Below are positions 1,679 through 55,401 of a DNA stretch of 64,000 nucleotides, piece by piece. The translations under genes and the position numbers were made by a program. A model generated the notes under the pieces. That model saw only the letters and a list, made by a program, of their open reading frames with translations. It had not been told where the DNA came from and made no database searches. Source of the DNA: Ylistrum balloti (lineage: Eukaryota); the NCBI RefSeq assembly GCF_031769215.1, contig NW_026781915.1, positions 2,480,001 through 2,544,000 of the forward strand, written 5' to 3'. Within the stretch, counting starts at the first letter, position 1. Each line of letters opens with the position of its first letter.

Positions 1679-2615
1679 CAGTAAAGGGAGTAAAAGTACA
1701 GTAAGTGATGTATATGTATACAACTGAGTACTGTTTACAGTATACAGTCAAGGGAGTAAAATAAAGTATCTGCTGTACACGTATACTACTGATTACTGTA
1801 CACAGTGTACAGTTCATGGATTAGATGTACAGTATCTGCTGTACACGTACACTACTGAGTACTGTACACAGTGTACATTTCATGGATTAGATGTACAGTA
1901 TCTGCTGTACACGTACACTACTGAGTACTGTACACAGTGTACAGTTAAGGGAGTAAATGTACAGTATCTACTGTACACGTATACTACTGAGTACTGTACA
2001 CAGTGTACAGTTAAGGGAGTAAATGTACAGTATCTACTGTACACGTATACTACTGAGTACTGTACACAGTGTACAGTTAAGGGAGTAGATAAACAGTAGC
2101 TGCTGTACATGTTTACAAATGAGTACTGTACACGTATACTACTGAGTACTGTACACAGTGTACAGTTAAGGGAGTAGAGGTACAGTATCTGCTGTACACG
2201 TACACTACTGAGTACTGTACACAGTGTACAGTTAAGGGAGTAGATGTACAGTATCTGCTGTACACGTATATTTCTGAGTACTGTACAAGGTGTACAGTTA
2301 AGGGAGTAGATGTACAGTATCTGCTGTACACGTATATTTCTGAATACTGTACAAGGTGTACAGTTAAGGGAGTAAATGTACAGTATCTACTGTACACGTA
2401 CACTACTGAGTACTGTACAAAGTGTACAGTTAAGGGAGTAAATGTATAGTATCTGCTGTACACGTATACTACTGAGTACTGTACACCGTGTACAGTTAAG
2501 GGAGTATATGTACAATATCTGGTGTACCTGTATAGAACTGAGTACTGTACACAGTGTACAGTTAAGGGAGTAGATGCACAGTAAATGCTGTACACGTATA
2601 CAACTAAGTACTGTA
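1679..2615. repeat. 66-nt tandem minisatellite, about 14 copies, internally palindromic
   Basis: Unit AGGGAGTAAATGTACAGTATCTACTGTACACGTATACTACTGAGTACTGTACACAGTGTACAGTTA; explains the 22-aa-periodic ORFs at 1880-2595. Confidence 0.95.
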
Positions 2616-3647
2616 ATGCTCGGGTTTGCCGGGCAGTTCTGAAACCTATGTATTATGTGATAAAATTACAACTGTAACTTTCATAGGTACATATATACTT
2701 CAGTCTGAATATAACTCTGATGTCTTGATGACATGTACATCTATAGATACATTGTTAATGCAGCTTTTAGACTTATATGGTAAATCTTATAAACATAATG
2801 TTCAATGTGAATATTTTATAAGGAATATAAATCTGATCCACTGACGCATTCTTTACTTGTGAACTTGTTGTCCGGTATGGTTTCCTGTTCGATCCGTTTT
2901 ACTAGATATATGGTGTGAATTGTAGATTTTGAAATAAAGCAACACATGTAATATATTGCTGTATCAGTTATTGAGGGCCAGATTAGTTTAATGTTCATTT
3001 GTGAAATGAATTTTCCTATCTTTATGATGTTGTACAGGTAGAAACACTAACAATATATTACAGAAACAAATTCGTTACAACCAAAGCCTTTCAACATCAC
3101 TAGGAGCTTATTAGTGTTTTATGTCAGAGTATAAGCCAGCCATATAGCAGACAGCGACGATTGCAAATTTAATCACTCGTGTCGATAATGTGCCCGAACT
3201 CATAATCTTCTATTCTCATGCGAACACTAAATAATAAGGTCAAAATTGAGATTTAGGAAAAGTAGCAGATAGAGGAAAACAGTTTTGCTGAGGAAATCCC
3301 ATAGAAGTGGGGCATGTTTGATTTCGTGTTTCCAACTAGACAACACAAAAACTTCTGAAGAGCTGCTTGCGCCATTAGTCTGTTACAAAATGACGAGAGT
3401 AACAGCTGGTTTAAATATCATTAATGCAAACACACCCAAACCTCTTCACTTCCCAAATAAAATCTGTGTATAAGTTTTCTTGGTTATTATATTTTCAACA
3501 GTAGTTTGGTTAAAGGAAGTTGAAATTATTACTAGCATATATACGACATCCGCCGTTTTTCATCGGAAATGTTGAGAACGTAGAAAGCTTCCTCTGTGTG
3601 CGACCAACACAGTTTTCAGTGTAGTAATAACATGACATTATAACATC

Positions 3648-6600
3648 ATGGACTACCTCTTATGTTTCTGTTTTCTGTGTATTTTTCACATTTCAACGGC
3701 TTCAGGTAAGGACCAAATATCACTTTACATATCTTTATATCTGTTTCAATTGCAATGCGTCGATTGTACAAGATCTTTTATATGTTTTCATCCGTCGGTG
3801 AAATGCTCGAGGATTGGCAAGTTGTAGCAATGTCTCCAAAAGAGATTACTTTTATTCCGTCATATTCTCCTCCTTTTGATCATTACTAATAGTATATTAT
3901 TAGTATTTATCTACTAAATACGATTTTAATGTGACATTTTCCATAGATCATATATCATTTACATGAAATCTCCTTTTCTCCCAGACGAGAAAACATTTAT
4001 CCTTTTTTCAACTACAAATATTGGGAGTACTTAAGTAAACTCGTTTAAATGCATTTGTCTCATGAATGTAGCATTGACACCAGGTTTCCCCAACACACAA
4101 CAAGTAAACAAATTTAATGTATTAGTAAGTTGACTTAATTAAGATTCAAACGCAAGTCTTATTTACGATGAAATCTACTAATTACAATAATAACTTTAAG
4201 TTGTTATGTAATTATAATTCCGAGATTGCTCTCTCATCCAACCTTAATCAAAGTGAAGCCTCCAGAGGGTCAGAGACGTTGGTAATGATTAGAACTTAGA
4301 CTTTTGAAATCAAGTATTTATTATGTTACAAAATAAACCCGAAATTGTAAAGTATTTCTACAAAGTATCAACAAAGTTTTTGTGTTATTTATCGCACTTA
4401 GCTCTAAAACAACAAGGAAAATATCGAAAAATAAACAGAATTTCTTAGGACAATGGCACACTGTTTTCCAATAATAGGTCGAGCACCTTTGTGATTCTTT
4501 AGAGGAATCACATAAAACACAACATCCAAAGTGTTAAAACTTATATATATCAACCATGATTTTTTTTATATAAGGCCACAGAGTTAGAAGTGTTCTCCAC
4601 CAGGTGGAGCAATTGTCCAGTGGTACAAAACCACCAACGAAAATACCAACATGACAACAGAATATCTGAGGACATTCCGAGGGGTACATTGCATTCTTGT
4701 AACTGATCCTCTAAAAAGGCAAGTCTATCCGTTTTGACTGAAGGAACTTTTTGTTTCGTATGTTTCTGTCAAAAATTGGTTGCATAATGACTCTAGGACC
4801 AAGAGGAATTTACTACAGCGACACACACAGAAGAACGAAAAGTACAGTATTAAAGTGAAGTACACGCAAGTGTTAATCAGTGTGTGAACTGTGTGGTAGC
4901 GTGTAGGAGGGGAAGGACATTAATCAATTCAAACATTTCCATGACTAATTCAATGTATCACACAGATGTATAAATTATACACCGAGCACAAAACTCAAGT
5001 AGAAACAATATCTACGAATATTTTCCAAAATCGAATTACTTGCTGATCAATACAACATTTCTTAAATCTTATAAGACAACGATAAGGAAACGGATAACCC
5101 TTGTTTATAATTTATCTTTAAACTTCACAAAAAAAAACTTGTTATCATTGACTTTGCACTTTGTTTACCTAATCTCTCTCAAAATTTCTTACCGTGGTCC
5201 TACAAACTACATACTCAATAATAAGCTAGTTGTGTGTGTTGACGTCAGCTATGATCATTCAAGGACGGGTAGGAGATGAGTGGATATGTTGAGGGCATGT
5301 ATTTTGGGAAGGCTGTGACATGTTCGTTTAAATCTCCTTACGAAACTGAAGCCAAAATAGCAGTACTACCACAATGAAGTTCACTACTGAAGGCACCAAG
5401 TAAGACGCCCCTCCCAATATCATTATACTGACAGTGGACACATTAGTTGTTACACTACCAAAACGTTGAACGTTAAGCAGGAAGTAGTAACAACCATTTC
5501 TGAAGACTCTGGTATGTCCCGTCCAGGGGACATAACCCAAAGTTTGCCCACAGGGTCAACATCCAATATAAAGTCCAAATGTGAGATAGTGTCAAGACAG
5601 ATATGAGAAAGAACACATACCCTTACAAAAGGGAGAAAATATAAAAGAACCCTATTAATAACCATGTAATATGGACAGCAGGTTAAAGAAATAATTTAGA
5701 AGTAGGCCGAATACAATGTTAAAATTGAAGACACCCAATTAGCTTTCGATGAATCTGAAACATATGCTTTAAATCTTAAACATATGCTTCTAATTTTCAA
5801 CATAAGCCTCTAAAAAAGGATTCACTTGATAAACATTTGCACTCTACCGTATCTAGTTTAAAAGAAAACTTTTTCCTGTGCAGCACTAGTCAATACATTT
5901 TAACTCTATTACAACGTGAGAACATAACTTCGTGAAAACACAACCGTACTGATTGAATTCAAGCTTGCTAAAAACAAATATCTTTGCTGAATAAGTTGGC
6001 TCTTGCACCCTACAATTACACATACTGAAAAACTATACCCTTACTTTAGCATACTTGTTCTTATGACTGAATAAACGAGAGCTTAGCATAAAAACATAAG
6101 TGTGAAGATCGATAATTCAGTCACTTTTTAATCCTTCATTCTTAATTCTACATACGACAACGATGTTTTTTCTTTGTTATTCAGAAACGAAATACTTCAT
6201 TTTTATCCAGTGAATGATATCAATCATTTCTACAAGGTGCCATTAACACCGGAGTTGTATCGGAAACATTTCACACGATAAAGTGTAACTATCTGGCGGA
6301 TAATTTTGACATCTCACTTGAATGAAACCGCATATTAAACGAAATCGATGTTGTATACAATGATAAAGAATTAAGTTAGTAATTTTTTCACGGACCAGCA
6401 AAACTTCATTTAATAAAATTTTTATATCGATAAACATCGTTTCTCTACAATAATTAAAAGCTAGATTTACTATGCTTTTCATTGATAATTAAACTTCATA
6501 TTTCAATTCTGAGTTAAGTAATAAGAAGTAGTGTTTGCATAAATGAGGATCCCAGAAGTTGATATTCATGATTAACTTATTAATAAGAGCTGACATTCCT

Positions 6601-9600
6601 GGAACTTATTTCACACTGAAAAGTTACCCGATTTGCTGTAAAATGTCTAAATGATAATGTGACATCTCTAACGTGGAATATTAAAACTTTACACGGCAAT
6701 ATGTAGATGAAGCAAGAAGAGCTGACATTCTAGTCTTATCAACAAAGTTATTTTTATTGTCCTCCATGTAAATCTTTCTTTGTGTTTTGCCTTCAAATCT
6801 GTGATTTTGAATTTGTGTTAAGATTGTGGTAATAATACTAAGATTCCCCATTACGACATTCCTTTCAGTGAACGTTGCTCTAAATAAGGCAGCTCAGCAG
6901 AGTTCTACGTACCAGACCTATGTAGCTGCAAATGCTGTCGATGGAAATGCCACGGCCGACTGGACAGTGGAAACCTGCAGTCATACTGATCCAAATGACC
7001 CTGTCCCATATTGGGTGGTTGACTTAGGTGAAAGGATGACGTTAGAAGGCTTCAATATTACTTACAGACAGCAACGTAAGTACCTGGCACTTTTTATAAA
7101 AAAAAACAAAAGAAAGAAACATCTTTACAAACATGATGATAACGTATCGATTAAACATGTTACATAGTAAATAGTTAAGGTGTAAAAACACACACAATAT
7201 GCATTGAGGCTGAAGTACCTGGTCAAGTGCGTAGATTATTGAACATGTTATATATACTCAGATGTGATAATAATGAAAATTCAGTACATGTTATAGTGTG
7301 CTATCTATCATTAAGTAGAAACGCATTTATTCAGTATGTGGCTCCTACCTGACATTTTTGTCCGCAAATAAACGCCGGGTGAAAAGAAGAAAACTCGATA
7401 AAGCGAAATAACGAAAAGACGCTAAATCGGGGTAAAAAACTTAACGCCTTGTAGTCTGTTTTACCTCGGTTTGACTCCTTTTCGTTTTTTCGCTTTGGCG
7501 GGTTTTCGTCTTTTCGTTTTTTCGTTTTTTTTTTTTTTTCTCAACAGGCAACAAAACCAAAAGGACAAAATGTCAGGTATAAGCGACCATAATTCAGTGA
7601 GTAGAGCATCCTTTGTCATCGTTTACGTGACCTTTGGTAAAACAGCAAGCTTCTTTGATTTCAAAATGACCCTGACTAAGGCGATCAACACTGCAACATT
7701 TCAAGTTTGTTGGTTATAGAAAACGCATCATCTGTTCAAGCATATTTGCTTTAAAATTGTTGTTTCAGTTATTTGAAAAATACGATAAAGAAACACGTTT
7801 GTCAGCTCAGGAGAAAACGATGTATATAAAGGTTTGTTACATAAAAACAGTCCAAGTGTGTAAATCATTAAAAATATGTTCCTTACACAGATGTGCAAGG
7901 TATAGGAAATACAGATGACCACAAAATTGTCGGTTAAAGAAGTAAAACCTAAATACGAGTTAATATCAATGAATAAAATTATTTACCATGACAACATCAG
8001 TCGTATAAATCTTCCTAATTTAAAATTTGTAATATTAAAGTATCCACGGAATAAAATGACTGTTGAGATGGTTTTGAGATATACATGTTATGAAGACTGT
8101 ATATTCATTTTCACAATCTGTCTTTAAATTTTGAGGAGACAGCATCGCCAGCATTTGACTGAAATTTCACCATGGAAACGCTTATGAGATATCCCTTTTT
8201 AGCAAGAGTCTCTTTTTAATATTTATTATTCGCATATTTGGTCCGTTAAATGCCAAATGACGTATTAGTTTGAAAAATGGTTTTGTTAGCATAAGTTAGT
8301 TAAGTATATTATTGATGTTGTTGTTTAAATGCGTTGACTTTAGTCAGCCACTTATATTAATTTTGAAGATCACTTGCAGGTTTAAGGTAGTTTATATATT
8401 TCTAAATGAATTCTCGTCTTTTTCAACACAGAGCCCCTTCGTATGAGTGGGTTCAGACTTATCGTGTCAAATACTTCACTTATGGTGGATGGTATCTCTG
8501 GTACACTGTGCTACGAGGAAGCTCGTCTTAATCCACCTACAATACAGTACATCGATTGTTTCGTCATCGGTCAGTATGTTTTTTATGAAGATCCGACAAC
8601 GGCGCCAGGAGACTTAGTCCCAATCATCGAGCTTTGTGAATTAGAGGCGTTTGGTATGATATCATTAACGTGTCCAATACTTTTGAAAATCTTAGACATT
8701 TACCGCACATGCAACTTTCCACACTACCTCAACTTATGTGCTCTAAAATGCAAATCAGACATTCTAACTTTCAACAGCATTATCTATAACCTTTTCTTGT
8801 CACTTGTAGCGTACACGAATACATATTCTAGGGAACAAACTGTACACACACATCAAATAAGTTTTGCGTTCATGGGTGCTAAAATAACAAACAGTAAAAC
8901 ATGTGACTAATATTAACTCGACTGTTTATTTCTTTCTCATTTTGTGTCGTATAAAGGTTGCCGTAACGGATCCTACGGACCAGATTGTAATACCTCCTGC
9001 GTGGAAGGCTGCCAGTCTGGAATCTGTTATCCAGACAATGGAACCTGTGTGTATGGCTGTAAACCAACGTGGTTAGGTGACAAATGTGACCAAGGTAAAT
9101 TCTTTTGAGTGACCAAGGTTAAACTTTTAACCCACTGTTTATAAAGAAAAAGGATCATCACGATTCACAGTGACCATTGTAAGACGTACTTTTGTTTAAC
9201 ATCACTGTTGATATCGCAAAGATTTACCATCCTCTTGGGTTTTCAATGTTTAACATCGTCAGTTTCAAAACTGTTTTTTTTTTTTTTTTTTTTCATATTG
9301 AAGATTCCCAATTTTTCCCGGTGACTAAAGTTACACGTTATAACTGTTGATATCTCGACCAAGACATCATAGCAGTAATCTTAATATTCAATATATCTAA
9401 CAACTTCGGTCCAGTGACCACTCTTACCTGTAATCTTCTGTTTGCCAAATTGTCTGTGATGTAAGCTAGGCGACTCTTTCTAGATATGTTATTTATCTGT
9501 ATTGTCAACAGTTGTACGTTTCAGATCTGTGATAGAATGATATAAGGTAGAAAAGGATAATGGAATAAACTCGGAGGATATTTCTTTAACACCTTTATTA

Positions 9601-12600
9601 CATCTCCTGGATAAATACTGTCCATCAGATGTAAAGTAGTCGGAATAATACATAAAAGAAATGCTTATTGATTTAACCTAGTTATGATGGAAATGATAGC
9701 TGATACTAAGTGAAAGGATGGAGAACACTTTTAAGTGTTTGGTTTTCGTGTCCCTATTCACTAATAGGCAATCCACTATATATATATAAACATTTTTCGA
9801 AAGTGACAGAAATACATTTGTGTTAGCGATGGTGTTTTCACACAAATATGCCTTTGAATGTGCTTTAAAATTGGGAGGTTGGTTATCTATGAAAAAGATA
9901 TGTATCCAATGATAGATAGAGTAAACGGCATTTCTAATTCGTTTAGCCATGGGAATTTTAATGTTTCCGTTTTGCTTTGATCCTGTGAAGTGATAAATAA
10001 TGAAAAGGTTCATAATAAAATCTAAAATCGAAAAGTTTTATTTTATGTCTGATAACCTTTTTCGAAAAAATATTCGTTGCACTTCAATACCTTTCCATAC
10101 TTAAACATACAGTTATTTATGTTTGACATATTTTTATTCTTGAAACACTCATTATATGGTCTGATGTAGTTGATTCAATATCTATCATAATATGAAACAT
10201 CTCCGAGCGCGACTATCCTGTCTGACATGTTTTCTTCTGTTCTGAAGCAAGAAATTCAAATGAAACATTTTTGTAATTTTAGTGTGTATGAACGGTACCT
10301 GGGGAGCCTTGTGTAATGAAACCTGTTTCTGTGACATTGACACGTGTAATGTCTCTACTGGGATGTGTCAGGAGGACAGGTGTCAACCTGGATGGCAGGG
10401 CATACATTGTAACCAACGTAAGCAAGGAATATCGGACATCATCCTTGTGACTTTTCTGAAAGTGTAAACTTGGAATCCATCACTATTTATAGTGGCTAAG
10501 TGACGATAAGTTTAAATCTTGGTTCCCATGCTAAGCCATATCCTTTTAGTGGTAGATATTACATACATATGTATAATGTAGACTCCCAATACACTGTTGT
10601 GTTGGTGAAGTTTTAGTGTCAATCGTCTGTTCGTGTGTTCACACTATGGTTTGTTTGGCCTTTGTTTTGAAGTAGAACGTGTGATTGTTTTGTCATAGTT
10701 TCGACCACATGAATAAAACATTAGTGAAATTGTGTTGCATGTGTGGAACCACGTATATTTCACAAGAACCTCAAAAATGAAGCATTTCTTTTTATCCGGG
10801 AAAAAATGATAAAATGTTTATCATTTTATAAGCTTTAAGATGTTGATTAATTGGTCCGAACAGCATCCATAGACAAAAACAACGTCAATTATCATGTTCT
10901 CACTGTAATCATTAATTAAGTCAGGGTGTTAAACATATATCACTTCTGTACTGAGCCTGGTAATGTTTCAAAAACCGGATCGCCAACCTGAGCATTAGCT
11001 GCCAATAATTTTCATGAAAGTTTTCTTGATACTAAGCTTATACATTTTATGGCAGAGTTATTTGCCTTGTTATGATTAACAGCTGGTTGTACCTATGTTT
11101 TTGTTTGATTTACTTTGTAACGTGATAAAACTATTCATGTTGTTTGATATCAACATTTTAGCGTGCGATTGGTGGACGTTTGGTCCGTCTTGCAATTTTA
11201 CGTGCAACTGTCTCTTCGAGGAACTTTGCGATCCAGTGACCGGAATATGTCCGGGAGGGTTATGTTTTGACGGCTGGAAACCGGACACCTGCCATGAAGG
11301 TTTGAACACCGTTTTGTTACATTCTGACATTGGATATATCCCTAATAGCAATAAGCAACACTTGTGACATGTTAACAATTTCCATGATAAATACTTAGTT
11401 CCGATCTTTGCCGTAAACCACATACCACGTTTTAAACCATTCGAATAATGGCACATGAAATATTCCCATCTGCTTTGCTGTCTTGATATTATTCATTTAT
11501 GAAATTTAAGAATTTCATTAATTTTATAGGGTTACTGCACTTATCAACTGGTCTCTGACATGGTTTCCGACCAAATATGGTTTTCCTCAGTCCTCTCCTT
11601 GGCTTCATGTTTAAGGCCCTAATCATCTGTGGTGAGTCCTTGAAGGACGAATCAGCTGTATGATGTAGCATCACTGACAAAGTTTACCTCTCTCTTTCTA
11701 AATTTGTATTGAAAGGTACTGTTCACTTGTGTTTTTGTTCGATATTGGATTTTGAATAAAGGATCTCTTCGATCAATTTCAATCGATGAATATTTGAAAG
11801 GTTTTCTCCAAATAAATCGAATCCCAGTCCAATTGATACATCATTTTGAATTTCGTTCAAATCACAAAAATTGTGAATGCTCAGACTGATATGTTTCCAA
11901 CACATTCAAAAAGAGCATTGTACAAAAGACAAACAAGTGAATGAAATCTTTCAACAGAAATTTAGAACCATATATTGTCAAATAATTAATCAAACTGCAT
12001 CACAAAGCCTTTCCTCTCTCTGCGACTCGTCAGTGGTGCTAAAGGCTAAATTTGAAACTTGGGAGGCGACTGAGGAAACATGCCATTCAAACGCCTTTAT
12101 ACAAACTGACACAATCTTCAAATTTAAACAAAATGATTGAATATGACAAAATGATCGTGTTACTATATGGTTTTTCTTGTCTCAAACAATGATATATGAA
12201 TTAATTAGCTTGGCATTGCTATTTGACATGTTTTATTTTAGTTTGTGATACTAACATGTACGGCCCTGGCTGTAACCTTACTTGTGGTGAATGCTACAAC
12301 AGTACGTGTGATCATGTAACTGGTTATTGCCCTGGACTGTGCTCACCAGGATGGAGTGGGCCAATGTGCAGTACACGTAGGTTTTATGTGATTTCAATAG
12401 TAAAAACTTACCATCATCCATAAATTGTTAAATGTGTAAATTCGTTTTGAATATGCAGTTGATAATCTGTTTAAATTATGTGATTTCACCATAACATGTC
12501 TAGGAAGTTTAAACAATAAGAAACGATTTCAAAAATTGAAATAATAATAATGATAACCTTAGAATGACCATGGTATAAGATGTGCTTAATTTACATAAGT

Positions 12601-42312: not shown

Positions 42313-45289
42313 ATTGCCCCGAATTAAATCTTATTGCACTAGCTTTGTCCTTTGTTTTGATTTTGCGCAACTGTTTACGTTTTGCAGGAAGTGTATCAGA
42401 ATTCTTCGCGGAGACGACATTATAGGTCACTGATTGGCTAGCGAGAATATTGGGACATGTTTGATTGGTTCGTTGCGTTTCGATGTTAATGCCACATGGC
42501 AGGTCACATGGTTTTGTTTACATCGATCAGCTGAGAGGTTTGAGAAGGCTTACCACTGACTTTACTTCGCAGTTTTCATGTTATGACGCATTTGCATGCC
42601 TAAGCCCTGGATTTCACCTAGTTTTCTTAACAAGAAGGGTCGTCAGCATACCACAATATCTAAATGTTAAAATAGAATAAGTAGACACATACATGGATGC
42701 ACACATATCTAATGTCAAATTAATGACATTTTAACACATAATCATCGAAAAATCGTACATCAACAAATTCTCATGGTAAAGTATTTTGGGTAAAAAAAGT
42801 AGGACATTTTTTGTATCAGTTTCAATATAACTACACGTACTCCTCAAGGACATTTCGATCTTTATCAGCTAGTTTTAATATTTTTTCGTTCTCCCTACTT
42901 GTACAATAACGACAACGTTTTAAACTTTTTAAGTGTACTGTAATTGTGTCACGGTTTTCTGTTCAAAATCAAATCTTCATTCACTCAAAGAACAAGCAGT
43001 GTAGATCTCTACTATCAAATTATTGCTGGTATAATCCAATAGACTCACCCTGTTTCATTTCAACAAATCTAATACAAACATATACGTGCATTAACATTGT
43101 TGCTACATGGTATGAACATACATTGTGTTACAGTACATGAGTAATGTAACGCCAGCTTGCCTCTTCAAGTATTCAAGTGCATGATTTTTTTTATATATAT
43201 ATTTAGGAAAACATACTTATATATAGCAACATTTGGTCTTGTAAATGCTTCATATTTGACTTAATAAGAGACAACTGGTGACATGATCTGCCTAATGCGG
43301 TTAAGTATCAAAATCTATCTGACAAGGAAATACTGGGATTTCCTCACTGTAATGAAATTGATATTATTGACGTCGGAAATCTTTTTCCTCGCTATCTATT
43401 CACTGGAAAACTGTCTTGCCATAATTTGTTTAGTATGTAGGTTGCCAGGTTATGCGGTGATCATGCTCCTCTCCGGAAAAACGGTTAATTAATGGGGAAA
43501 ACTAAAATAAGAAAGATACCGTTTAGTAAAGATAGTAAGTAAAGATACGTACATATGGTTTATACTTTTTACATCATGACGTATCACATGACTACCATAA
43601 CATGGGAAGGCATGGAATATTTGTGTGATATGTGTGACTAAGTATCAAAGCGAGTATCATATATTCATCAAAGACGTGTCCAAGTATTACAGCATCAGAC
43701 TTTGGACCCCGGTGCCAGAGATACGATGCGCGTGGTTCGATATCCATAGTCGGTGCGACCACTTTCTCAAGAAACTGTGTTTATGGATCTCGACCTGTAC
43801 TGTCGTGGTCGTGTCCTTGAGCAAGACTATTTACCCAGATGCTTTGGGCAACATACGACGGGATTCCCGCATACTGTTCAGTGAGATACTGCCTACTACG
43901 AGAAGGCCACAATTCAAAAGAAATCCACCAAGCAAACCCAGTATCACAGCAGTTACAGACGTACATGCATTAAAATAACATAATACAAAAAAGACGTGCC
44001 CCAGTATTCAGATGCGACTACATTCCTTTATAAGAGTCTGCTTGTAAACACGCTCTCCTTGCCAAATAGATGTGCGCCGTACGTTTTCCCTTATAGATGT
44101 AAGGCTACACATATCTTACACGGCAAGTAAGTATAATGTACCACGAAATTCGTTAGGCTAGAACAGTGTCTGGTTTGGCAAACATCCAACTAATCTCTGT
44201 TGTTCATTCCCTTTTGACCAGCTGTTGATAGAATGGCTAGGAATTGAAAACCTGATGACAACGACGACGTTTTCAGTCGATGATAGTAACATCCTCGTTT
44301 ATTCCGTCGCATCACACTATATCCGTCACACTATGCATAAGCCAATTTTATTATTCTATACATTATTTCCATTTGTTCCCCTTGTGTACTGGGAAAAGAT
44401 GGCTGTTTAGATATATATACATCTCTGTTTTCAGTAAACACTCTATTTGAGAATCTGATAACAAAATAATGAATTGATCTAAACCATGATTAGACGCAAC
44501 ACCTTGTCAACCTCAATATACTTAACGAAAATGGACTTATCTTAAGTACGCTTTCCTAAGACACGTAAACATAAATGATTAATTCTCATAGCAATGTACT
44601 CAGAGACGAAACAGAAAGGGACTGTATTTAAATCTGTAAAAGGGTATCGAAAGTAAACTGATGATGATAGCGAAACACGGAGCACCGTACTCGGAAAATG
44701 CACAGAAAATGTGTCAAGGGTGTAGCTGTGACGTGTGTAGATAAACCACAACACGTGACACACTTACCTAAAAATTCTACAGGTAAACATTAAGTTAACA
44801 ATGCTGCATTGTCACTTAACACTTAACCTTGTATCGTATGCCATGGCATGCAGTTTGTTTGACATAATGAATTTATAATTGAATTTTAATAGCAGATGTC
44901 ATATAACAAAGATTTTAATTTGAACTTGTCAACCTTTGACCATTTGCATCGCATCTAGGTCAATAGTTAGGACCTCCTTACGGTCTAAAATACAGCACAC
45001 TATCCAAGGTCGGTCATCTACCGACAAACTAGCTGGTAGGTGACGCCGTACCCGGCACAAACATCATTTCCTTACAGGATAGAGGACGTGTGTACAGTCT
45101 CTCGTTAAATTCTCAGATACAAGTAAGTCTTTCATACTGTTTGTGCTATGGCAATTGTTGATATCATATTTTCCACTACAGTAAACAAAATCTCTACTAA
45201 CAGGAGATGAGGTCAACAGACTTCGAACATACTATCATGTCGATTAAAGACGTTTGAAATACGGTGGTTACATGGGAAGAGAGCAATGA

Positions 45290-46040
45290 GTACATAAGTG
45301 TAAAAGGTACAGGTAGGTACAGGTAGATACAGGTGAGAAATGTTACATGTGAGGCACGGTACGTGTGATAGATGGAAGAGGTGATAAATCTAAAAAAAAA
45401 AAAAATGGAGAGGTGTGAGACATGGTACAGACGAGAGACGGTACGGGTGATGGATGGTCAAATAAGGGAAGTAATGAATACAGGTGAGACATGGTTCAGG
45501 TTAATGGGATACAGGTGAGCAATAGTTACAGGTAAAAAATAGATACTCGTGGGAGATGGTACAGGTGAGAATGGTGAAGAGATTTACGTGAGAGACAGAT
45601 ACATGTGAGACGGATACAGGTGAGTGATTTCACTGATGAATGACAGATACAGGTGATTTGGTGGTTCAAAAGAGAAAGTAACACAGGTGAAAGGCGGATA
45701 CAGCTGAGCGATTGATGCAAGTGACTGATGTAACAGATTGGTGGTAGATTAATACAGTTTACCGTTAAGAAGTGGTAAAAGTGCGAAATGGATATTGGTG
45801 AGAAATGGTACGGAGATATGATACAGGCGAAGAATGCAACACAAATGCCCTATAGGTGAGAGATAGAACAGAGAGGAGGTACAGATTGGTATGTGTGAGA
45901 GACGGTATATATTAGAGAGAGACGATGCAGGTAATATATGGGTACATGTGGGGAATGGTACAGACGAGAGATGGTGAGGAGAATCAAAGGGGATTTATTC
46001 TGAGGGGATATAGGAAAGAGATCGATACAGGCGAGTGATA
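45290..46040. repeat. Degenerate purine-rich repeat of GATACAGGTGAG-like motifs
   Basis: About a dozen ACAGGT(G/A) copies with irregular spacing, e.g. 45308-45335, 45478, 45508, 45558, 45615, 45647, 45683, 46024. Confidence 0.7.
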
Positions 46041-47075: not shown

Positions 47076-47230
47076 CTCTGCTATATTTGATTCTAATAAT
47101 TAAATTGTGTTACATGTTGCTATATACATAATATGCGTCTTTTGTATAATCTTAATAAGGCATTAACATAAAGAGAAGTTACATGATTTAGAGTGATTCT
47201 TTTGATCTTGTTCCAGGAGAAAGCACTAAA

Positions 47231-49550
47231 ATGCGGGGCCCCGGCCCTTTGCTGGTCGTGTGGCTAGCCGCCATTCTCGTTGCATCTGCGTGCGGTCAAC
47301 TCTGCACCCGTCCACCAATATGGCGGACGGAGAACGGCACGAGTCCCATGCAGGAAACGGAAGGCAACGTACGAGTGGTGGCTCTACTAAAGGCCAGCTG
47401 AGGATTTTGTGTACAGGTTGCCACAGCGTAAGTATCAAAAACTTTCACGGATAAAACTCGCAGGACTTTGAGAACTTACAGCTCATGGCATTGTGATGTA
47501 TCTACATATAATCGCTTTAATGTTATTCTAGTATTTCTACTTGATAAGATGAAAAACATAGCGCCATATGTAAACACAATTTCTACAAAATACCTTGCAT
47601 GTCTGATCAGGTCTGTGCTAATTTTAGGATTTATTTATAATCATAAATTTATTTTTGTTTTAGACTCGAACGCATCCGGTCCAAGTTCGAACGCCGTGGC
47701 ATAACTGGAATCAAATTCATGATTGTCAATATGAACTTGGACGAGGCACGACAGCAAGTCCAGAATCTTAAAAATGTCGTTAACGAGGTGGAAATTCCGA
47801 TATATCAGGACAACGATGAGTTACAAATTTGGAGAACACTCGGCGGAGACAAAGACTACCTCTACATTTATGACGGGTAAACCTATCTATGATGGCAGAC
47901 AAATACACTTTTTTACTGAAAATTCACAAATGGCATTTTCACATTTCAGATCAGCCTAATAGTATCATCAAGTTTTGTTTGTTTGGATTTTGTTTTTACA
48001 AATGCATGGATATATGAAATGAATCATATAAGCGTACTTTCTATAGAAATTTTTCATTTACTTACAGGTGTGGAATGCACAGATACCTACTGACGTCAGC
48101 CGACATATTGGACCGTGTGCAAAGTTCCATAGATAGGCGCCTTATCAAGCGTCGCATACGCCAGGTAAAACGACGCGATCGGTGCGCCCGGCAATGTCGC
48201 AGGTACAGGCGGCGCTTGATGTCGGCGGAGGACATGGACCGGATGCAGGGACACCAACCACATGTTATATCTATGTCACGTCAAAGGAACTCCGATTCCG
48301 ATGCAAATCGGACACCTGCGTGTATGGAGCGTAACTGCCGAGGACAGAACAATCCACAAAGCAGACACAGATTGATTCATCGGATGTGACGTCACATGTT
48401 GAGACGAGGCCTTCTGGGAGAATCGACACAGTCTTGATTGTGTCCACGCAACTTCCGGGATGTATGTACGTGCACACGTTATCGTCAGTCAGGTAGAATG
48501 CGTTTCTGCGCATGCTCTGAAATCACGCCTTCCATTAACGTGCGTTGTATGTGATATAACTGTAACGAGTTTACTAACGGACATGACGTAGAAATTCCAC
48601 TTGTCCGACCGTCTTGACGACTGTTGACCAGCTGACACTGTAATAGCGACAATAACCTCCAGTCAGCAACATGTCAGTGACCAACAGGACAATCGACTGA
48701 CATTGCTACACCATCATCAGTCTCCTGATCTTGTGATGGAGGTGTCTGCGTATGACAAGGAATTAACGAGTCGTGTATGTGACGGGCGACCGACATGGGA
48801 ACGTCATGAGAATGTCATTTAGACGCGACGTCATGTTTTTGACCTAGGGACGCATCACACGGTGATATGTGACACTGCCAGACAACGTCAACCGGCGTCA
48901 GCGAGAACTCCTGACAGTGACACGGACAACAGAGTGGTCGGAGTAGCGACAGTGTTGTCTGAGAATGACAACACACGACCGGAAACTGTCATTGAAATTG
49001 CGAGGTTTCCAGCAATGGAAACCTTCAGTGACAATGACCAATAGGTCGGACTCCAACTGCTGTTGTCCACTGACGAACCGGAAGTGACACCGGAAGTAGA
49101 TGACATTGACCAACAACCGCCACGGCTGGAAAGACTTGAGAATGCATATCAGGTAGGAACGGTGACCATAGTTCGTGCATGTGAGGCACAGACCAACAGC
49201 CGTGTGGATGACAGTCATTGACATCTGATATGGCATCCGACATCGTCTGACAGTGCGACAGACAGAATAATACGACGGAAATGTGAGCTTGACAGAGTCT
49301 GTCCGGTCATCCGGATGGAACCTGACAATGTCACTCTATCAGCACAGACTGACAATGACAAGGTCTTACTACAGACGGGAACATTTGACAAGAAACTGGG
49401 GTCGTGGGCGCACCCATTTGACCTTGACAACAACAATGACGGTGACCCGTTTCCGCGTGACAATGACGAAGCAGCCGGAATGGGAAGTCACTCTGACTTT
49501 GACAGTCAGCTGGACGCAACTGACAGTGCTCAGGGTCGCATTTAGGGTAG
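47231..49550 (+). CDS. SELENOP: Selenoprotein P with Sec-rich C-terminal tail; about 630 aa, 42 in-frame TGA read as selenocysteine
   Basis: Coding exons 47231-47427 (MRGPGPLLVVWLAAILVASACG signal peptide; VVALLKAS-TGA-GFC = UxxC, TGA at 47399-47401), 47664-47876 (IKFMIVN..IPIYQD..IWRTLGGDKDYLYIYD, SelP N-terminal thioredoxin-like fold) and 48068-49550 (CG.. then 41 in-frame TGA from 48387 to 49523, first TAA/TAG is TAG 49548-49550). Total 1893 nt. SECIS-like hairpin in the 3' UTR. Confidence 0.93.
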
Positions 49551-49817
49551 AAAGGAAACCAAAATTAAGACACCAATTTCAATTTTTTACTGATGCTTAC
49601 AAAAACGCTAAATGACATCAGCAATTATTTGGCGTTTTCTAATTCATATATATAACCTTAATGCTAAAACAAAATATCATTTCTCCAAATACAACTTTTA
49701 ACATACATCAATTGGTAAGAAAAAAGCGAAGTTCAAGAAATGCTACCCCATGCTACTGACCGGGACAATATATATACCATATCAATGGTTTCATGAACGA
49801 GTTGGTCATACAATGGA

Positions 49818-49880
49818 TAGCCTACATGACGGCACTTGGACAAAACCCAGAAGGTATCCAATGTTCAGATAATTTGGCTG
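49818..49880 (+). promoter_or_regulatory. SECIS element (type II/form 2 candidate) in the SELENOP 3' UTR
   Basis: ATGA (49826-49829), 12 nt, AAAA (49842-49845), then GA (49868-49869). Helix I TAGCC/GGCTG; helix II GGCA-C-TTGGA with TCCAA-TGTT; apical minihelix ACC/GGT closing CAGAA. Folded by eye only. Confidence 0.8.
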
Positions 49881-51799
49881 ACCAGTTGACCAAAGCCCTG
49901 ACATGACACTATTGATATTGACAAGAGAATGAATCTATGACATGAAACTGGTATTACACTGTATTGAACATTGTACTGCTGAGGTGTGAATAAGGAAGGA
50001 AGTGGTGAGTATGTGCTGCTAAAATAAATGTATCTTGTTATTTGTACTATGTTTATTAACAATTGTTTGTAAAACAAACAGAAAACAATGCATATATGTG
50101 CATCTGCAATCTCTGTGTCGCTTCTGCGATTACATCTTCGAAATCCAGAATAATTTACACATCATCTCAGCGCCTTTGGAAAGTGACAAGATGATATCAC
50201 AGTAGGCCAATTAATCGATTCGAGAAATGCAAACAAAACGTCCATTAAGATTACAGGAATGCTTACTTCCCTTACTTTTCAGGCCCGTTTACCAAGACAC
50301 ATTCCGAGAATTACAGAAAATAGTCCAATAGACATCCTGAATTTCGAAGATGTTTAACCCCTCCATCGGGGTCATCCATTTATATAATTTATAGTTAGCC
50401 ATTATAAATAATATGTTTAAAATGTTAATAGGCTAGCAACAAAGAACCCGTGAGCAAAACGCATTTTAAGAAGAGAATACGTGTACTTGAAAATAACATT
50501 CCAATAAAATATTCGCATTGTAAATTAGATTGAGTAAATTGCGAAACTTCAACATTGCTGTTTTGCACATGTTTTGTTTGTGACTAGCCCTCATCAAGCC
50601 CCTGTGTTCAGTGTAATCGAGTAAAACATAATTGTGAACGAGAAAACTATATTTGTGTTAACTTATCATTCCCTGTCAGTCTTTAAATAGTGTTACCGCC
50701 ACAATAAATTAGCCATTTAGGTAGAATGTATTTCTATACTCTATTATTTGGATATGTATTTGGGAAGATTGCAACAACAGATGTAGAATTCTAGCTCACA
50801 AGCACCTGTGTCAGAGAGAGTGTGTTTGAGGGAGAGACGTATCGGTAATAATGGTCGGTATGATACACGTGTTCGTCGACCTGTGACGACCCGCCATAAA
50901 GCTAGGGATAGAAGTGGTGGAGTCTGAGGGACTCTAGTCGACCGGTGTATCCTTACGACCACTGTGTGTAAGGAGATTAACACTTCCTTCCTTGTTCAGT
51001 ACTAATGTGAAAAAAATGTTATGAATAATAATAAAAATGATAATAACATACATTCATGTGTTTTTTCTGTCGTATGAGTGAAATAACCGGAGTCTGAAAT
51101 GTAATAAGCTGAAACGATATTCAGGACTTGGCCGCGTGTAACTACTGTAGGAACACGAGCTGGCAGCAACCATTACAAAATGTTTTTTTAATGATTTATG
51201 TTTAGAAACATATCTGGTATGGAGTATATACACTTTACTTATGCATTTTGAAGCCTTTCTAAAACCTACCTCGTTCCAAAGTGAAGGGATGTATACTTGT
51301 TGATCTAAACTCTTTCCAAAACTTGACCCAAAAAACCTTTAAATTGGGTTATAGATAAAAGACACGTTTTATTCTGTAAGTCCAAAAGAAGGAGATCATT
51401 AACTGTCTTAACATTAAATCAAGACCAAAAATGACTGTATGCGTTAAATAGAAGAAAGGTAGGCATATCACAGATACCTCAAGCTGGACGATGACGCGGA
51501 CGGTGAACAACATTAGCTGACAGTTTGCGATAACCTCAGAGCTAAAAAAATATATATGTATATATACACTGCAGTATTGTTTCTCCGTATTTTCAAATGT
51601 TAATATTGAAGACCTTTAATGTAAATATTTGAATTCCCTAAGATAAAATGTCGTATATAAAATATTCCAGAGCAGCAGAATTTTTAAAAAATGCTTCTAG
51701 CCCTAAACGGTCACGAGTTCTATAGTTGTCGTTCTTATCATATACCATAGAAATTGTCTCATTGACAAAGTAAGATTACTTGAACTACATTGTACATAG

Positions 51800-52480
51800 C
51801 ACAAATACAAAATACAACATTATCTGTTATCCCATGCTAATAATTCTAACCAAATTTGCATTATTTCCAATGGAAATGAATGTTCTTCGACGCCATACCC
51901 CCTAGAGGGCATTAAGACACTTAATCCATAAAGAACATTTGATTCTATCATATCTCGGTCTTGAGAAGAAGACTTTTGAAATTTGAGCCAATTTGACACC
52001 ATTTGGTAATGACCATCGCCCCATTGTCAATATGTACATCAAACTGTCACCCGAAACTTATTATTTTTACCAAATATGAATTATTAGCAATGCAAATTCA
52101 ACAACTTATGCTCAGAAATGTAACTCGTCTATATAAACCATATTAAACTTTACCTCCTGTTGGACCCTGGATTCATGAAAATCGCTCATTTGATAAAGCA
52201 CCTAAAGACCCTTCTGTCAATGGAAAGTATTGAATCATACCCCATCTGGTTCTTGAGATCTGAAATTTCAGTGAATTTGATCCCCTTTGCCTTGCACAAC
52301 TGGTCCCTTGGAAGTGGATAATTAACATTTAGCCATGAATGGGCTTTACAAAATTCCATAAAAACAGGTTCAAGTTTTTTTTAGAAGTTGAAAATGTCAC
52401 TTGCTAAGGACAAATGACTCCCGACACTGTACAAAAGACAATTGGAAAAGGTCACTTAGACACTTTGTCTTAAGATGATA
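51800..52480 (-). mobile_element. Degenerate copy of a HINE-like element related to 31303-32009
   Basis: Shared motifs TCTTGAGAAGAAGACTTTTGAAATTT..ATTTGAC, GGATTCATGAAA, and AAAGGTCACTTAG near the end. Confidence 0.4.
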
Positions 52481-55401
52481 TAGAAACTGGATCTTAAACG
52501 TTCTGTGCAATGACTATAGTAAAAGCCAAGGAAAACTCTGTAGCATGAACATATTCACATTTTCATGTAGGACTGTTAGAGAAATAGCTGCATGTATCTA
52601 TTATTAACATTGGGAAACACCTGCTTGTGCCATTTCCTATATATTATGAGGGATTTAGCCCCTTGAAAGGCTCCTGGATTAAGCCTAGTGGTCTGTCTTG
52701 TTTCACCTTTTCATGTGTATGTGGTTACAGTGATTATTAGATCATTCAATTGTCTAAAGAATATCACTAACCTGGGAGTCAATCAAACTTAATTTATAAC
52801 AAATACAATAACATTACCTGGGTTTCATTTCTCACCAAAAATAGCAAAAGAAGAAGTAAGGTTTGAAGTCAGAAAGACAAAAACATTAAATGTTTATACT
52901 TTATAGACAATATTACTTGGTCTTGAGGAGTCATATATCCAAGGATGCTCCATAACTTTATATTTATTGTAAATGATGTTATAGCAATCCGTTGACAACA
53001 AACCAGTGCATGTATACACTACCAACAGAGAGTGATACTTTTCAAAATGAAGCATCTATTGATTATGATAAGATTAACATTTAACCAATGTTAATTCAAG
53101 TAAAAAGCAGCTGGAGACAAAACATTATATGGAAGTACAGTGTATATGACATTATTGAAATATCAACACTCTTTCAGCAATCATTTTGAGTTTATTTAAG
53201 TCAACTATTATTTTACTGGAGCAACAAAGAAGTATTATACACCAACTTAAACAAAGCATGGTTCAAATCAACAATTTTGTTCTAGATGGTTTTGCTCTCG
53301 AAGAATTCTTAACAACATTTTTAGTTACAAAATGCAAAACACACACAGATCCACATGTATATAACAATTTTAAATGCTGTCTCATGGTTGGACTGATACC
53401 AATAAACAGTGAATCATAATAAAGTATAACTGCATATCAAACAAAAGGTTTGTAGAAAATATAATTACAATGACACTTGAGCACCAATTGGTACAGTAAG
53501 TATACATACTCTTACTTCATGCATGACCTGACACAACAGTCAAAAATAAATCGGAACTCACACTAACCATAATTCAGTACAATACAAATGACCATCTGAT
53601 TTCATATATGCTTCTTCCAAGTATGAATATTAGACATAAAATTGTCAAAAACATATCAGCACCCAACGTTAGTTACATATATACCTCAAGTTACAAGATG
53701 GAGGATTTAACACATACTATTGTCTATTTGTACAAATGACACACAATTAGCACCTTTAAAATTTCAATACAAATTTAGAAAATTAAAAATAACATAGCCA
53801 AATATAATGAGTTACCATGGTAAACTGAAACAAATCAGAAGAGAACATGGTTATATTTCATACAAATATGAAGACTAGACACACACCATAGTGAAAATAA
53901 TACAAATCAGCAATGTTAGCACTGGACATTAGTTACAAAAATATACCTCATACAAGTAAGAGGACAAGACACATACAGTAGGTCAAAAAAAATTAATTAA
54001 AAAGAAAAGAAAAATCAAAACAAGACTGGACACCGGTTATAATTCATATCAATAAGAAACTTGATACAACAATGTCTGTCAATCAACTTATAATAGTAGA
54101 TTTAACCTTCATTTCATACATATTCATGGTCAAAGGAAAAGCCACACATGAAGTTAATATCATTATTGGTTTTCTTTAGACATTTATATGTCACTATTTC
54201 AATTTGACATTTGGAATTACAAATTAATTGATAATGTATTATTTGAAATAAAAAACCAAATCTCTAGAAATGGCAAACAAATTATAGCTGGTCAACATAT
54301 AGATTTAAAACAATGACCTTTTACATAAGTAAATGTTACAAATTGAAATAATAGAATTGTAAAGTGAGGAACACTTATGTGGAGTAATATTTCATCTATT
54401 TCAATCTCACTTTTGATATGTAAACAAGATAAATAACTGAAACCAAATTAATGTTTTGATTATATGTACTGTATAATTTAATGAATTCATTGCAATAACA
54501 CCAGCAGTTGAAAAGTTATTTCGAACAGAACTTTTCTTCAAAACAAACAATTATGGCATCCATGTCTCAAAATGAATGAGTATTGGGTTACAAAAATATT
54601 TGACATTACTTAAAATCTGCATCATAGAATATTGTAATATTAACAAAGTTATAACTCTAAATATCAATTTTGGAAAATTGTACTTGCAAGCATTGTTATA
54701 TCATCATTATGAAAAATATCAAATCACTATCACTTCAAAGAAATTTTGACAAAATAATACTTATACCTGATTAATAAATCAAAAGCATGTATATAACTTT
54801 CCCATTTTCAAAACACTTTAGATATAAACTGAAAGAGATTCTCTGAAATAAAAATTAACAAAACAGGAACGAAAATAGAATAAAAAAAAAGGCAAATAAA
54901 TCATTAACTAAAAACTGGAACCAAATCAAGCAAGCATAAGAAATCATCTAAAGAAAATAGTATATACCTTAAATACTGTAATAAATGTAATTTTATTGCC
55001 AATTGCTGATATTCTGTATCAAGTCAGAGGATAATTGTTATATAAGGGACATAACTCCTATAGAAATTATGATTACAAAAAGAAAAAAAAAATGTTTTAA
55101 ACTTCGAAAATGAGTGATAACATTTGCCAAGTTTCCTGAATGCAAGTTCATGATGTAAGAGTTTCCAGGACTAATGCCTACCAGCAAGCAAAGGTTAGAC
55201 ATGAAACATAACAGAAAATTACGATAAAAAACAAAAGTAATTTTGATTATGATGGTGGATTGGCAACGAGCATGATGACAATGCTGATCATTCAAAATCA
55301 TCTTTATACATTCAAATTACACATTTAAATAATAAAACCAGTTCGCGAAAATCTTGATCCCTATTTAAGTATGCGACATACACATATGAAATCCATAAAA
55401 G

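Follow-up and report, generated by a model that had tools for sequence, protein, structure and literature searches.

The 64-kb stretch of DNA analysed here (hereafter, the window) very probably contains an intact pectinid selenoprotein P (SelenoP) gene, in which 42 UGA codons would be recoded as selenocysteine (Sec) to give a secreted selenium carrier or store. The gene has a long frame interrupted by UGA as its only internal stop type, belongs to the SelP_N family, carries a tail under purifying selection in which Sec and Cys codons exchange, is followed by SECIS-shaped structures, and has relatives whose spliced transcripts extend through the same region. A hidden selenoprotein P had been claimed at this place by an earlier, sequence-only reading, and the SelP_N match, the selection on the tail, the TGA/Cys exchange and the SECIS-like elements all agree with that claim.

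The gene model comprises three coding segments (47231–47427, 47664–47876 and 48068–49550) with GT-AG borders and compatible phases, which together make up 630 codons including 42 TGA (Table 1). The sequence-only reading had predicted a protein of roughly 630 aa with junctions at 47427/47664 and 47876/48068; both junctions proved to be of the GT-AG type and in frame, and the product is 630 aa long. The first coding exon is preceded by an acceptor AG at 47215–47216 and followed by a donor GTAAGT at 47428, and its junctions are identical in Pecten maximus and Argopecten irradians, while the second-exon junction is borne out by the intron-free transcripts of four relatives (L001, L005, L006 and L007). 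Upstream of the coding exons, a putative non-coding exon was placed by a 73-nt match (83.6% identity) with the second exon of the A. irradians transcript L005, and the alignment of three scallops stops at its conserved GT donor. At the 3' end of the gene, similarity to P. maximus runs out at approximately 51066, and the A. irradians transcript ends roughly 55–85 nt past the island that holds its second SECIS element. Additionally, a second AATAAA is found at 50023–50028, between the two SECIS elements, from which an isoform with a single SECIS could arise. The 5'UTR exon and both SECIS-like hairpins fall outside the interval 47231–49550.

Table 1. Features of the predicted SelenoP gene in the window.
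Feature	Position	Strand	Remarks
Non-coding 5'UTR exon (putative)	44959..45122	+	Predicted by homology; donor GT 45123-45124; AG precedes 44959
First coding exon	47217..47427	+	CDS from ATG 47231; putative signal peptide ~47231-47293; thioredoxin-like domain begins, with Sec codon 1
UGA1, Sec of the U-x-x-C redox motif (K-A-S-U-G-F-C)	47399..47401	+	In frame with ATG
Second coding exon, core of SelP_N thioredoxin-like domain	47664..47876	+	AG/GT borders; Pfam match
Last exon, coding part	48068..49550	+	End of N-terminal domain, Arg-rich basic linker, Sec-rich tail, TAG 49548-49550; continuous with exon 2 frame
Sec-rich tail, 387 codons	48387..49547	+	41 TGA, 23 Cys codons, 30 [U/C]-x-[U/C] pairs (10 of them U-x-U)
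SECIS element 1 (candidate), form 2	49806..49891	+	Core 49826-49870: ATGA, helix II, AAAA, 3-bp mini-stem, AGAT
SECIS element 2 (candidate), form 2	50863..50950	+	Core 50883-50928: GTGA, 10-bp helix II, AAAG, 3-bp mini-stem, TGAG
AATAAA, probable main poly(A) signal	51030..51035	+	Predicted from the sequence

When read to 49550, the frame of position 48075 contains 492 codons, among them 41 TGA, no TAA and a single TAG, the terminator at 49548; retranslation thus returned the same counts that the sequence-only reading had given. The other two forward frames of 48075–49550 contain mixed stops (6 TGA, 5 TAG and 1 TAA in one of them; 8 TGA, 8 TAG and 9 TAA in the other). Within the tail (48387–49547), 41 of the 52 TGA triplets fall in frame 0 (binomial p = 2e-11). 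Tails simulated with a first-order Markov model trained on the tail itself (20,000 runs) held a mean of 14.0 in-frame TGA (sd 3.6) and a maximum of 30, and only 0.8% of them were free of in-frame TAA and TAG. Furthermore, where TAA and TAG together have a frequency of 0.0396 per position, as in the window overall, a run of 387 codons lacking both triplets has a probability of approximately 1.6e-7. The G+C content reaches 0.48–0.50 between 48000 and 49500, compared with approximately 0.33–0.37 in the flanks. A simple-repeat artefact was ruled out for the tail, which contains only short motif-level repeats of 16–27 nt and no tandem array. The 42nd TGA, noted earlier at 47399 within a KAS-U-GFC motif, is indeed in frame with the ATG at 47231, from which it is separated by 168 nt (56 codons).

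The Pfam family SelP_N (PF04592) matched the first two coding exons above its cut-off of 23.2 bits, with an E-value of 1.9e-6 (27.9 bits; residues 22–56, profile positions 3–36) for exon 1 and of 1.4e-12 (47.9 bits; profile positions 47–116) for exon 2. The two matches occupy consecutive profile positions, in keeping with the SelP thioredoxin-like exons that had been proposed. Among solved structures, none matched exon 2 by sequence. The UGA1 column holds TGA in all four scallops, as well as in six other bivalve SelenoP transcripts. At the N-terminus, residues 7–17 form the most hydrophobic 11-mer of the protein (Kyte-Doolittle value 3.18, compared with 1.80 or less elsewhere), small residues precede Gln23, and the SelP_N match begins at residue 22; this hydrophobic core and the start of the Pfam match are compatible with a cleaved signal peptide. 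Starting at the AUG, a stretch of ~55 nt is near-invariant in nucleotides among the four scallops and is recognisable in two distant bivalves, and codons 1–11 show no third-position change among the scallops compared. Folding of the start-codon region gave MFE z-scores that were not significant and, consequently, an initiation hairpin is regarded as a lead only.

An exhaustive search among representative proteins with exon 2 identified 33 relatives, one of which is a 590-aa protein with every TGA rendered as Trp by the gene caller. The exon-3 piece, in turn, matched P. maximus LOC117326371 (179 aa, 84% identity) and an A. irradians entry named "uncharacterized protein" (178 aa, 70% identity). 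Both database proteins start at an internal Met that closely follows UGA1, and their last codon directly precedes UGA2; the expectation that annotation pipelines would truncate the gene thus holds for these two entries, which represent the UGA1–UGA2 piece only. We compared the window with the sequences obtained by reading through the TGA codons in the genomic loci of P. maximus (L003) and A. irradians (L004) and in the transcripts L005, L006, L007 and L001. The P. maximus locus has the same three coding exons and encodes 630 aa with 42 Sec codons, the A. irradians transcripts encode 630 aa with 41 Sec codons, and L007, a contig incomplete at its 3' end, contains at least 40 Sec codons. Moreover, six further bivalve transcripts (L002 and L008–L012) exhibit the same architecture, with 36–49 in-frame TGA. 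The window protein is about 81% identical to those of P. maximus and L007 and 77% identical to that of A. irradians; at the nucleotide level, the identity over 48068–49550 amounts to 82% with P. maximus (blastn, 2 gapped positions) and 78% with A. irradians. From these matches the window derives from a pectinid scallop, which, given protein identities of roughly 77–82%, is neither P. maximus nor A. irradians. Mapped onto its own genome, the A. irradians transcript L005 falls into five blocks (exons), the last of which, 2193 nt long, contains the whole tail and the 3'UTR with both SECIS islands. Since a single last exon spans the tail and the 3'UTR, this related scallop retains the tail in its mRNA, with neither splicing nor truncation removing it.

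According to one alternative, the tail is not translated at all: a short N-terminal protein would end at 48387, and 48390–49547 would be a 3'UTR or a decayed remnant. In its favour, the publicly annotated proteins of P. maximus and A. irradians do end at the first tail UGA, this codon normally signals termination, and truncated SelenoP isoforms occur in mammals. The way in which the tail has evolved, however, renders this explanation extremely improbable. The differences between the window and P. maximus are distributed over the three codon positions as 43/25/123, with a threefold excess of third-position changes, and the dN/dS ratio of the tail is 0.12–0.16 (0.09–0.14 in the N-terminal part) at a synonymous divergence pS of approximately 0.40–0.55 between scallops. 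Frameshifts scattered through the tails of orthologues were among the features that the sequence-only reading had named as contradicting its claim, and no indel was found within the 387 tail codons in any scallop species pair. Neither an untranslated sequence nor another reading frame can give rise to this combination of third-position excess, low dN/dS and absence of indels. Furthermore, TAA and TAG are absent from one frame only, and in four lineages TGA is replaced by nothing other than Cys codons. In the codon alignment of the four scallops, 38 TGA columns are invariant and six are variable, the only alternative in the latter being TGT or TGC (two of them are also gapped where contig L007 ends). 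The alignment of TGA with TGY codons that the earlier reading had advised looking for in other bivalves was thus found among these four scallops, and selenocysteine is classically recognised by just such an exclusive exchange of TGA with Cys codons.

The recoding of UGA as Sec depends on SECIS elements, and a SECIS-like hairpin formed part of the original claim; two conserved ones lie downstream of the stop codon, the first of them with covariation (Table 1). A pattern-plus-fold scan of both strands of the 64 kb (128 kb in total) identified eight sites, two of which are located within 1.4 kb after the stop codon, far above the ~0.1 expected from eight sites on both strands. The MFE folds of both candidates place helix I beneath an internal loop that is followed by helix II, and both present the (A/G)UGA...GA core, helix II, the unpaired AA(R) and helix I; their MFE z-scores are modest (−2.3 and −1.4). 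When the 3'UTR was compared by blastn with those of P. maximus and A. irradians, similarity was found mainly in the islands that hold the two candidates, both of which are contained in the A. irradians transcripts. Between them lies a spacer of 1 kb, most of which is not conserved and which measures only ~0.3 kb in A. irradians.

The RNAalifold consensus of SECIS1 from six bivalves adopts the full SECIS shape, with compensatory changes in 12 of 20 pairs and with invariant TGA, GA and AAACCC...GGT apex. A covariance model of SECIS1 built from relatives only, with the window excluded, matched 49806–49891 with 78.3 bits (E = 2.6e-16), the next match in the 64 kb scoring 17.5 bits. As for SECIS2, three scallops retain the 10 bp of helix II, in which one compensatory change (C-G to U-A) and one G-U to G-C change occur, and the core of the element reads GUGA in the window and P. 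maximus and the canonical AUGA in A. irradians. No Rfam SECIS family matched the whole window at the gathering score, nor did any match 49400–53500 or the 111-nt stretches around each element at E-values up to 10. The sole Rfam match in the vicinity, a weak resemblance to a box C/D snoRNA over SECIS2 (13.9 bits, E = 0.39), was regarded as due to chance or to a kink-turn likeness.

These elements also bear on a second alternative, in which the tail is translated but UGA is not read as Sec, either because it is decoded as Cys or Trp by near-cognate readthrough or because the code is reassigned. Metagenome gene callers do place a Trp at each TGA of these genes, and C is the next base after 32 of the 41 tail UGAs, a context in which termination is generally considered weak. 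This base is mostly C in all ten bivalve sequences, and it may indeed weaken termination or may merely result from the frequency of Gln, His, Pro and Arg after Sec. We nevertheless assign to non-Sec readthrough an extremely low probability, since the N-terminal UGA occupies the place of Sec in the U-x-x-C motif of SelP_N, two conserved SECIS-shaped elements are present in the 3'UTR, and the other forward frames of the exon treat TGA no differently from TAA and TAG. Moreover, an oyster homologue with 46 Sec is reported, as cited in PMC8230778.

It could also be argued that the window holds a paralogue that was inactivated recently or is not expressed, with the functional SelenoP located elsewhere in the genome, as the SelenoP of the window species is known from genomic DNA alone and one locus was examined per species. 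Nevertheless, this copy retains the 630-aa length observed in P. maximus, the GT-AG junctions, both SECIS elements and the 5'UTR exon, and the dN/dS between the window and its relatives equals that among the relatives. A non-functional copy is thus very improbable, and an intact SelenoP gene continues to be the best explanation.

On this explanation, the SelenoP mRNA would contain three coding exons preceded by one or more 5'UTR exons, and its 630-residue secreted product would comprise a signal peptide, a thioredoxin-like domain with the U-x-x-C motif, an Arg-rich linker and a 387-residue tail carrying 41 further selenocysteines, most of them in [U/C]-x-[U/C] pairs. The two SECIS elements, within a 3'UTR of ~1.5 kb, would recruit SECIS-binding protein 2 (SBP2) and eEFSec, which would deliver Sec-tRNA at each of the 42 UGA codons by means of the standard eukaryotic machinery. 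Translation may, in large part, terminate at UGA1 or UGA2. By analogy with the SelenoP of vertebrates and oysters, the tail would carry or store selenium in the haemolymph. In the window species, the insertion of Sec, the secretion of the protein and its role in selenium transport or storage are thus predicted from what is known of eukaryotic Sec decoding and of SelenoP in general. In a less conventional proposal, the tail would be a position-specific folded or ligand-binding module (metal-chelating or receptor-binding), and the first ~55 nt a shared RNA element that gates initiation. The module was suggested by a tail that evolves as slowly as the catalytic domain, with 38 frozen Sec positions, no indel and 30 [U/C]-x-[U/C] pairs; we consider the proposal as a whole unlikely, and put it forward tentatively.

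The predicted protein resembles the SelenoP of the Pacific oyster (Magallana gigas) and other bivalves in having a signal peptide (putative here), a SelP_N domain with U-x-x-C, two SECIS elements in the 3'UTR and a long tail with UGA as the sole in-frame stop type, and its C-terminal U-x-U blocks can be aligned by eye with those of the oyster-like transcript L002. It differs from the oyster protein in belonging to another bivalve order (Pectinida), in its 42 UGA codons, compared with 46–49 (46 Sec are reported for the oyster), in its Arg-rich linker and in the GUGA core of SECIS2, shared with P. maximus. Translation of the oyster SelenoP was reportedly tested experimentally in the 2019 work of Baclaocos and colleagues. 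With vertebrate SELENOP, the window protein shares the SelP_N family and the first Sec position (compare V-V-A-L-L-x-A-S-U); in both, the last exon encodes a C-terminal domain rich in Sec, and the 3'UTR holds two SECIS elements. Human SELENOP has 10 Sec, and the window four times more. Vertebrate SelenoP carries a His-rich stretch at the position of the linker, whereas the window protein exhibits a basic linker instead (residues 151–243, with 4 His versus 26 Arg+Lys in 93 residues); a further difference is that both SECIS elements of the window are of form 2, with a mini-stem. P. maximus LOC117326371 and the 178-aa protein of A. irradians are orthologues with the same exon structure, of which the database entries cover only the part between UGA1 and UGA2.

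The sequence-only reading had stated that Sec-rich SelenoPs are known for bivalves at the clade level, which agrees with the citing literature: Baclaocos et al. 2019 (J Mol Biol 431:4381) is quoted there for 46 Sec in the oyster protein and for 132 in that of another bivalve, a freshwater mussel with 132 UGA (PMC8230778), and the most Sec-rich SelenoPs are stated to be those of bivalves (PMC8557442). Multi-Sec bivalve SelenoP has therefore already been published, the 2019 study being cited in PMC8230778, PMC13134290 and PMC8557442. The gene described here is a new, or at least uncatalogued and unannotated, SelenoP of this already known multi-Sec bivalve type, and, as both the phenomenon and the mechanism behind it had been described in 2019 for oysters and other metazoans, it raises no new question.

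Misannotation of selenoproteins is widespread (PMC12822975), and the present gene illustrates how standard annotation fails when recoding is heavy: the entries of the two nearest named species lack approximately 70% of the protein, together with its selenium, and in public metagenome-derived protein sets every Sec of the homologues appears as Trp. A correct gene model is relevant to selenium biology and to trace-element and heavy-metal studies in farmed scallops. Furthermore, the gene extends the set of aligned Sec positions and paired SECIS elements to a third order of bivalves, which is of use for investigating the processive decoding of dozens of UGAs by the ribosome.

Comparison of the SelenoP coding sequences of four scallops (among them Ylistrum balloti, Pecten maximus and Argopecten irradians) revealed near-invariance at the nucleotide level over approximately 55 nt from the AUG, with no third-position changes in codons 1–11. 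A likeness to the core of this region, ATGCG.GGCCCCGGCC...GG.CGTGTGGCT, is still visible in the distant bivalve transcripts L008 and L009. A CGGCC-N7-GGUCG hairpin folds at this position in several of the compared sequences, and its MFE z-scores did not reach significance. RNA structure in the initiation region has been reported for oyster and vertebrate SelenoP, and the conservation in scallops may represent its counterpart.

Upstream, the conserved 5'UTR exon lacks any ATG and therefore contains no leader ORF. In the small hairpin that it carries, the window has U-A as the sixth pair; P. maximus has a compensatory C-G there, and A. irradians a mismatch. At 45300–45900 on the forward strand, the following 5'UTR intron is skewed towards G (GC skew reaching 0.55), and this stretch contains short tandem repeats of ACAGGT type with periods of 10, 15 and 17. 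In P. maximus, a 254-aa gene call (2599–3363 of genomic locus L003) lies in the intron that separates the 5'UTR exon from the ATG-bearing exon; it has no Pfam match and may be a mobile-element remnant.

Locations of features within and around the SelenoP gene (window coordinates unless a locus is named)
Feature	Position	Strand	Remarks
Small hairpin GTCGG(N)...(N)CCGAC	45000-45030		within conserved 5'UTR exon 44959-45122
Conserved start region	47231-47290		L003 (P. maximus) 5809-5868; L004 (A. irradians) about 5806-5865; L001 (intron-free transcript of a relative) 73-132
Sec/Cys exchange columns	48990-49050 and 49290-49360		scallop codon alignment
AATAAA	50023-50028		between SECIS1 and SECIS2, in island conserved with P. 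maximus
Weak SECIS-like match	10331-10393	+	crude pattern scan or covariance model R1
Weak SECIS-like match	9192-9282	-	crude pattern scan or covariance model R1
Weak SECIS-like match	52842-52929	+	crude pattern scan or covariance model R1

In the 3'UTR, the AATAAA motif between the two SECIS elements could give rise to a shorter, one-SECIS mRNA. The inter-SECIS spacer is possibly an insertion, since the window and P. maximus have about 1 kb between the elements, A. irradians only about 0.3 kb, and conservation is mostly absent from 50080 to 50850. The weak SECIS-like matches outside the gene, with scores of 17.5 bits (E 0.28) and 15.5 bits (E 0.89), are probably due to chance.

Across all ten bivalve coding sequences, C directly follows the Sec UGA in 23–40 of 36–49 cases per species (32/41 in the window tail, 48387–49523), and the coding sequences themselves terminate at TAG or TAA. 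A preference for Gln, His, Pro or Arg codons after Sec cannot be separated here from an effect of termination context. Six full-length bivalve SelenoPs of 566–623 aa, retrieved from public metagenome- and Logan-derived protein sets (P0017 and P0044–P0048), show Trp at every Sec codon; their loci (L002 and L008–L012) are spliced transcripts, each with 36–49 in-frame TGA. The gene caller apparently selected a TGA=Trp code, and such misrendered entries pass for odd Trp-rich proteins.

Within the scallop alignment, three positions carry Sec in the window and Cys in at least one of the three other species (L-Q-U-Q-U, E-M-U-A-U and S-T-D-U-Q-U), whereas two show the converse (U-E-C-H and U-Q-C-S-G). 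Judged from these aligned codons, exchanges of both kinds indicate that Sec/Cys turnover is still under way, in both directions, within the Pectinidae.
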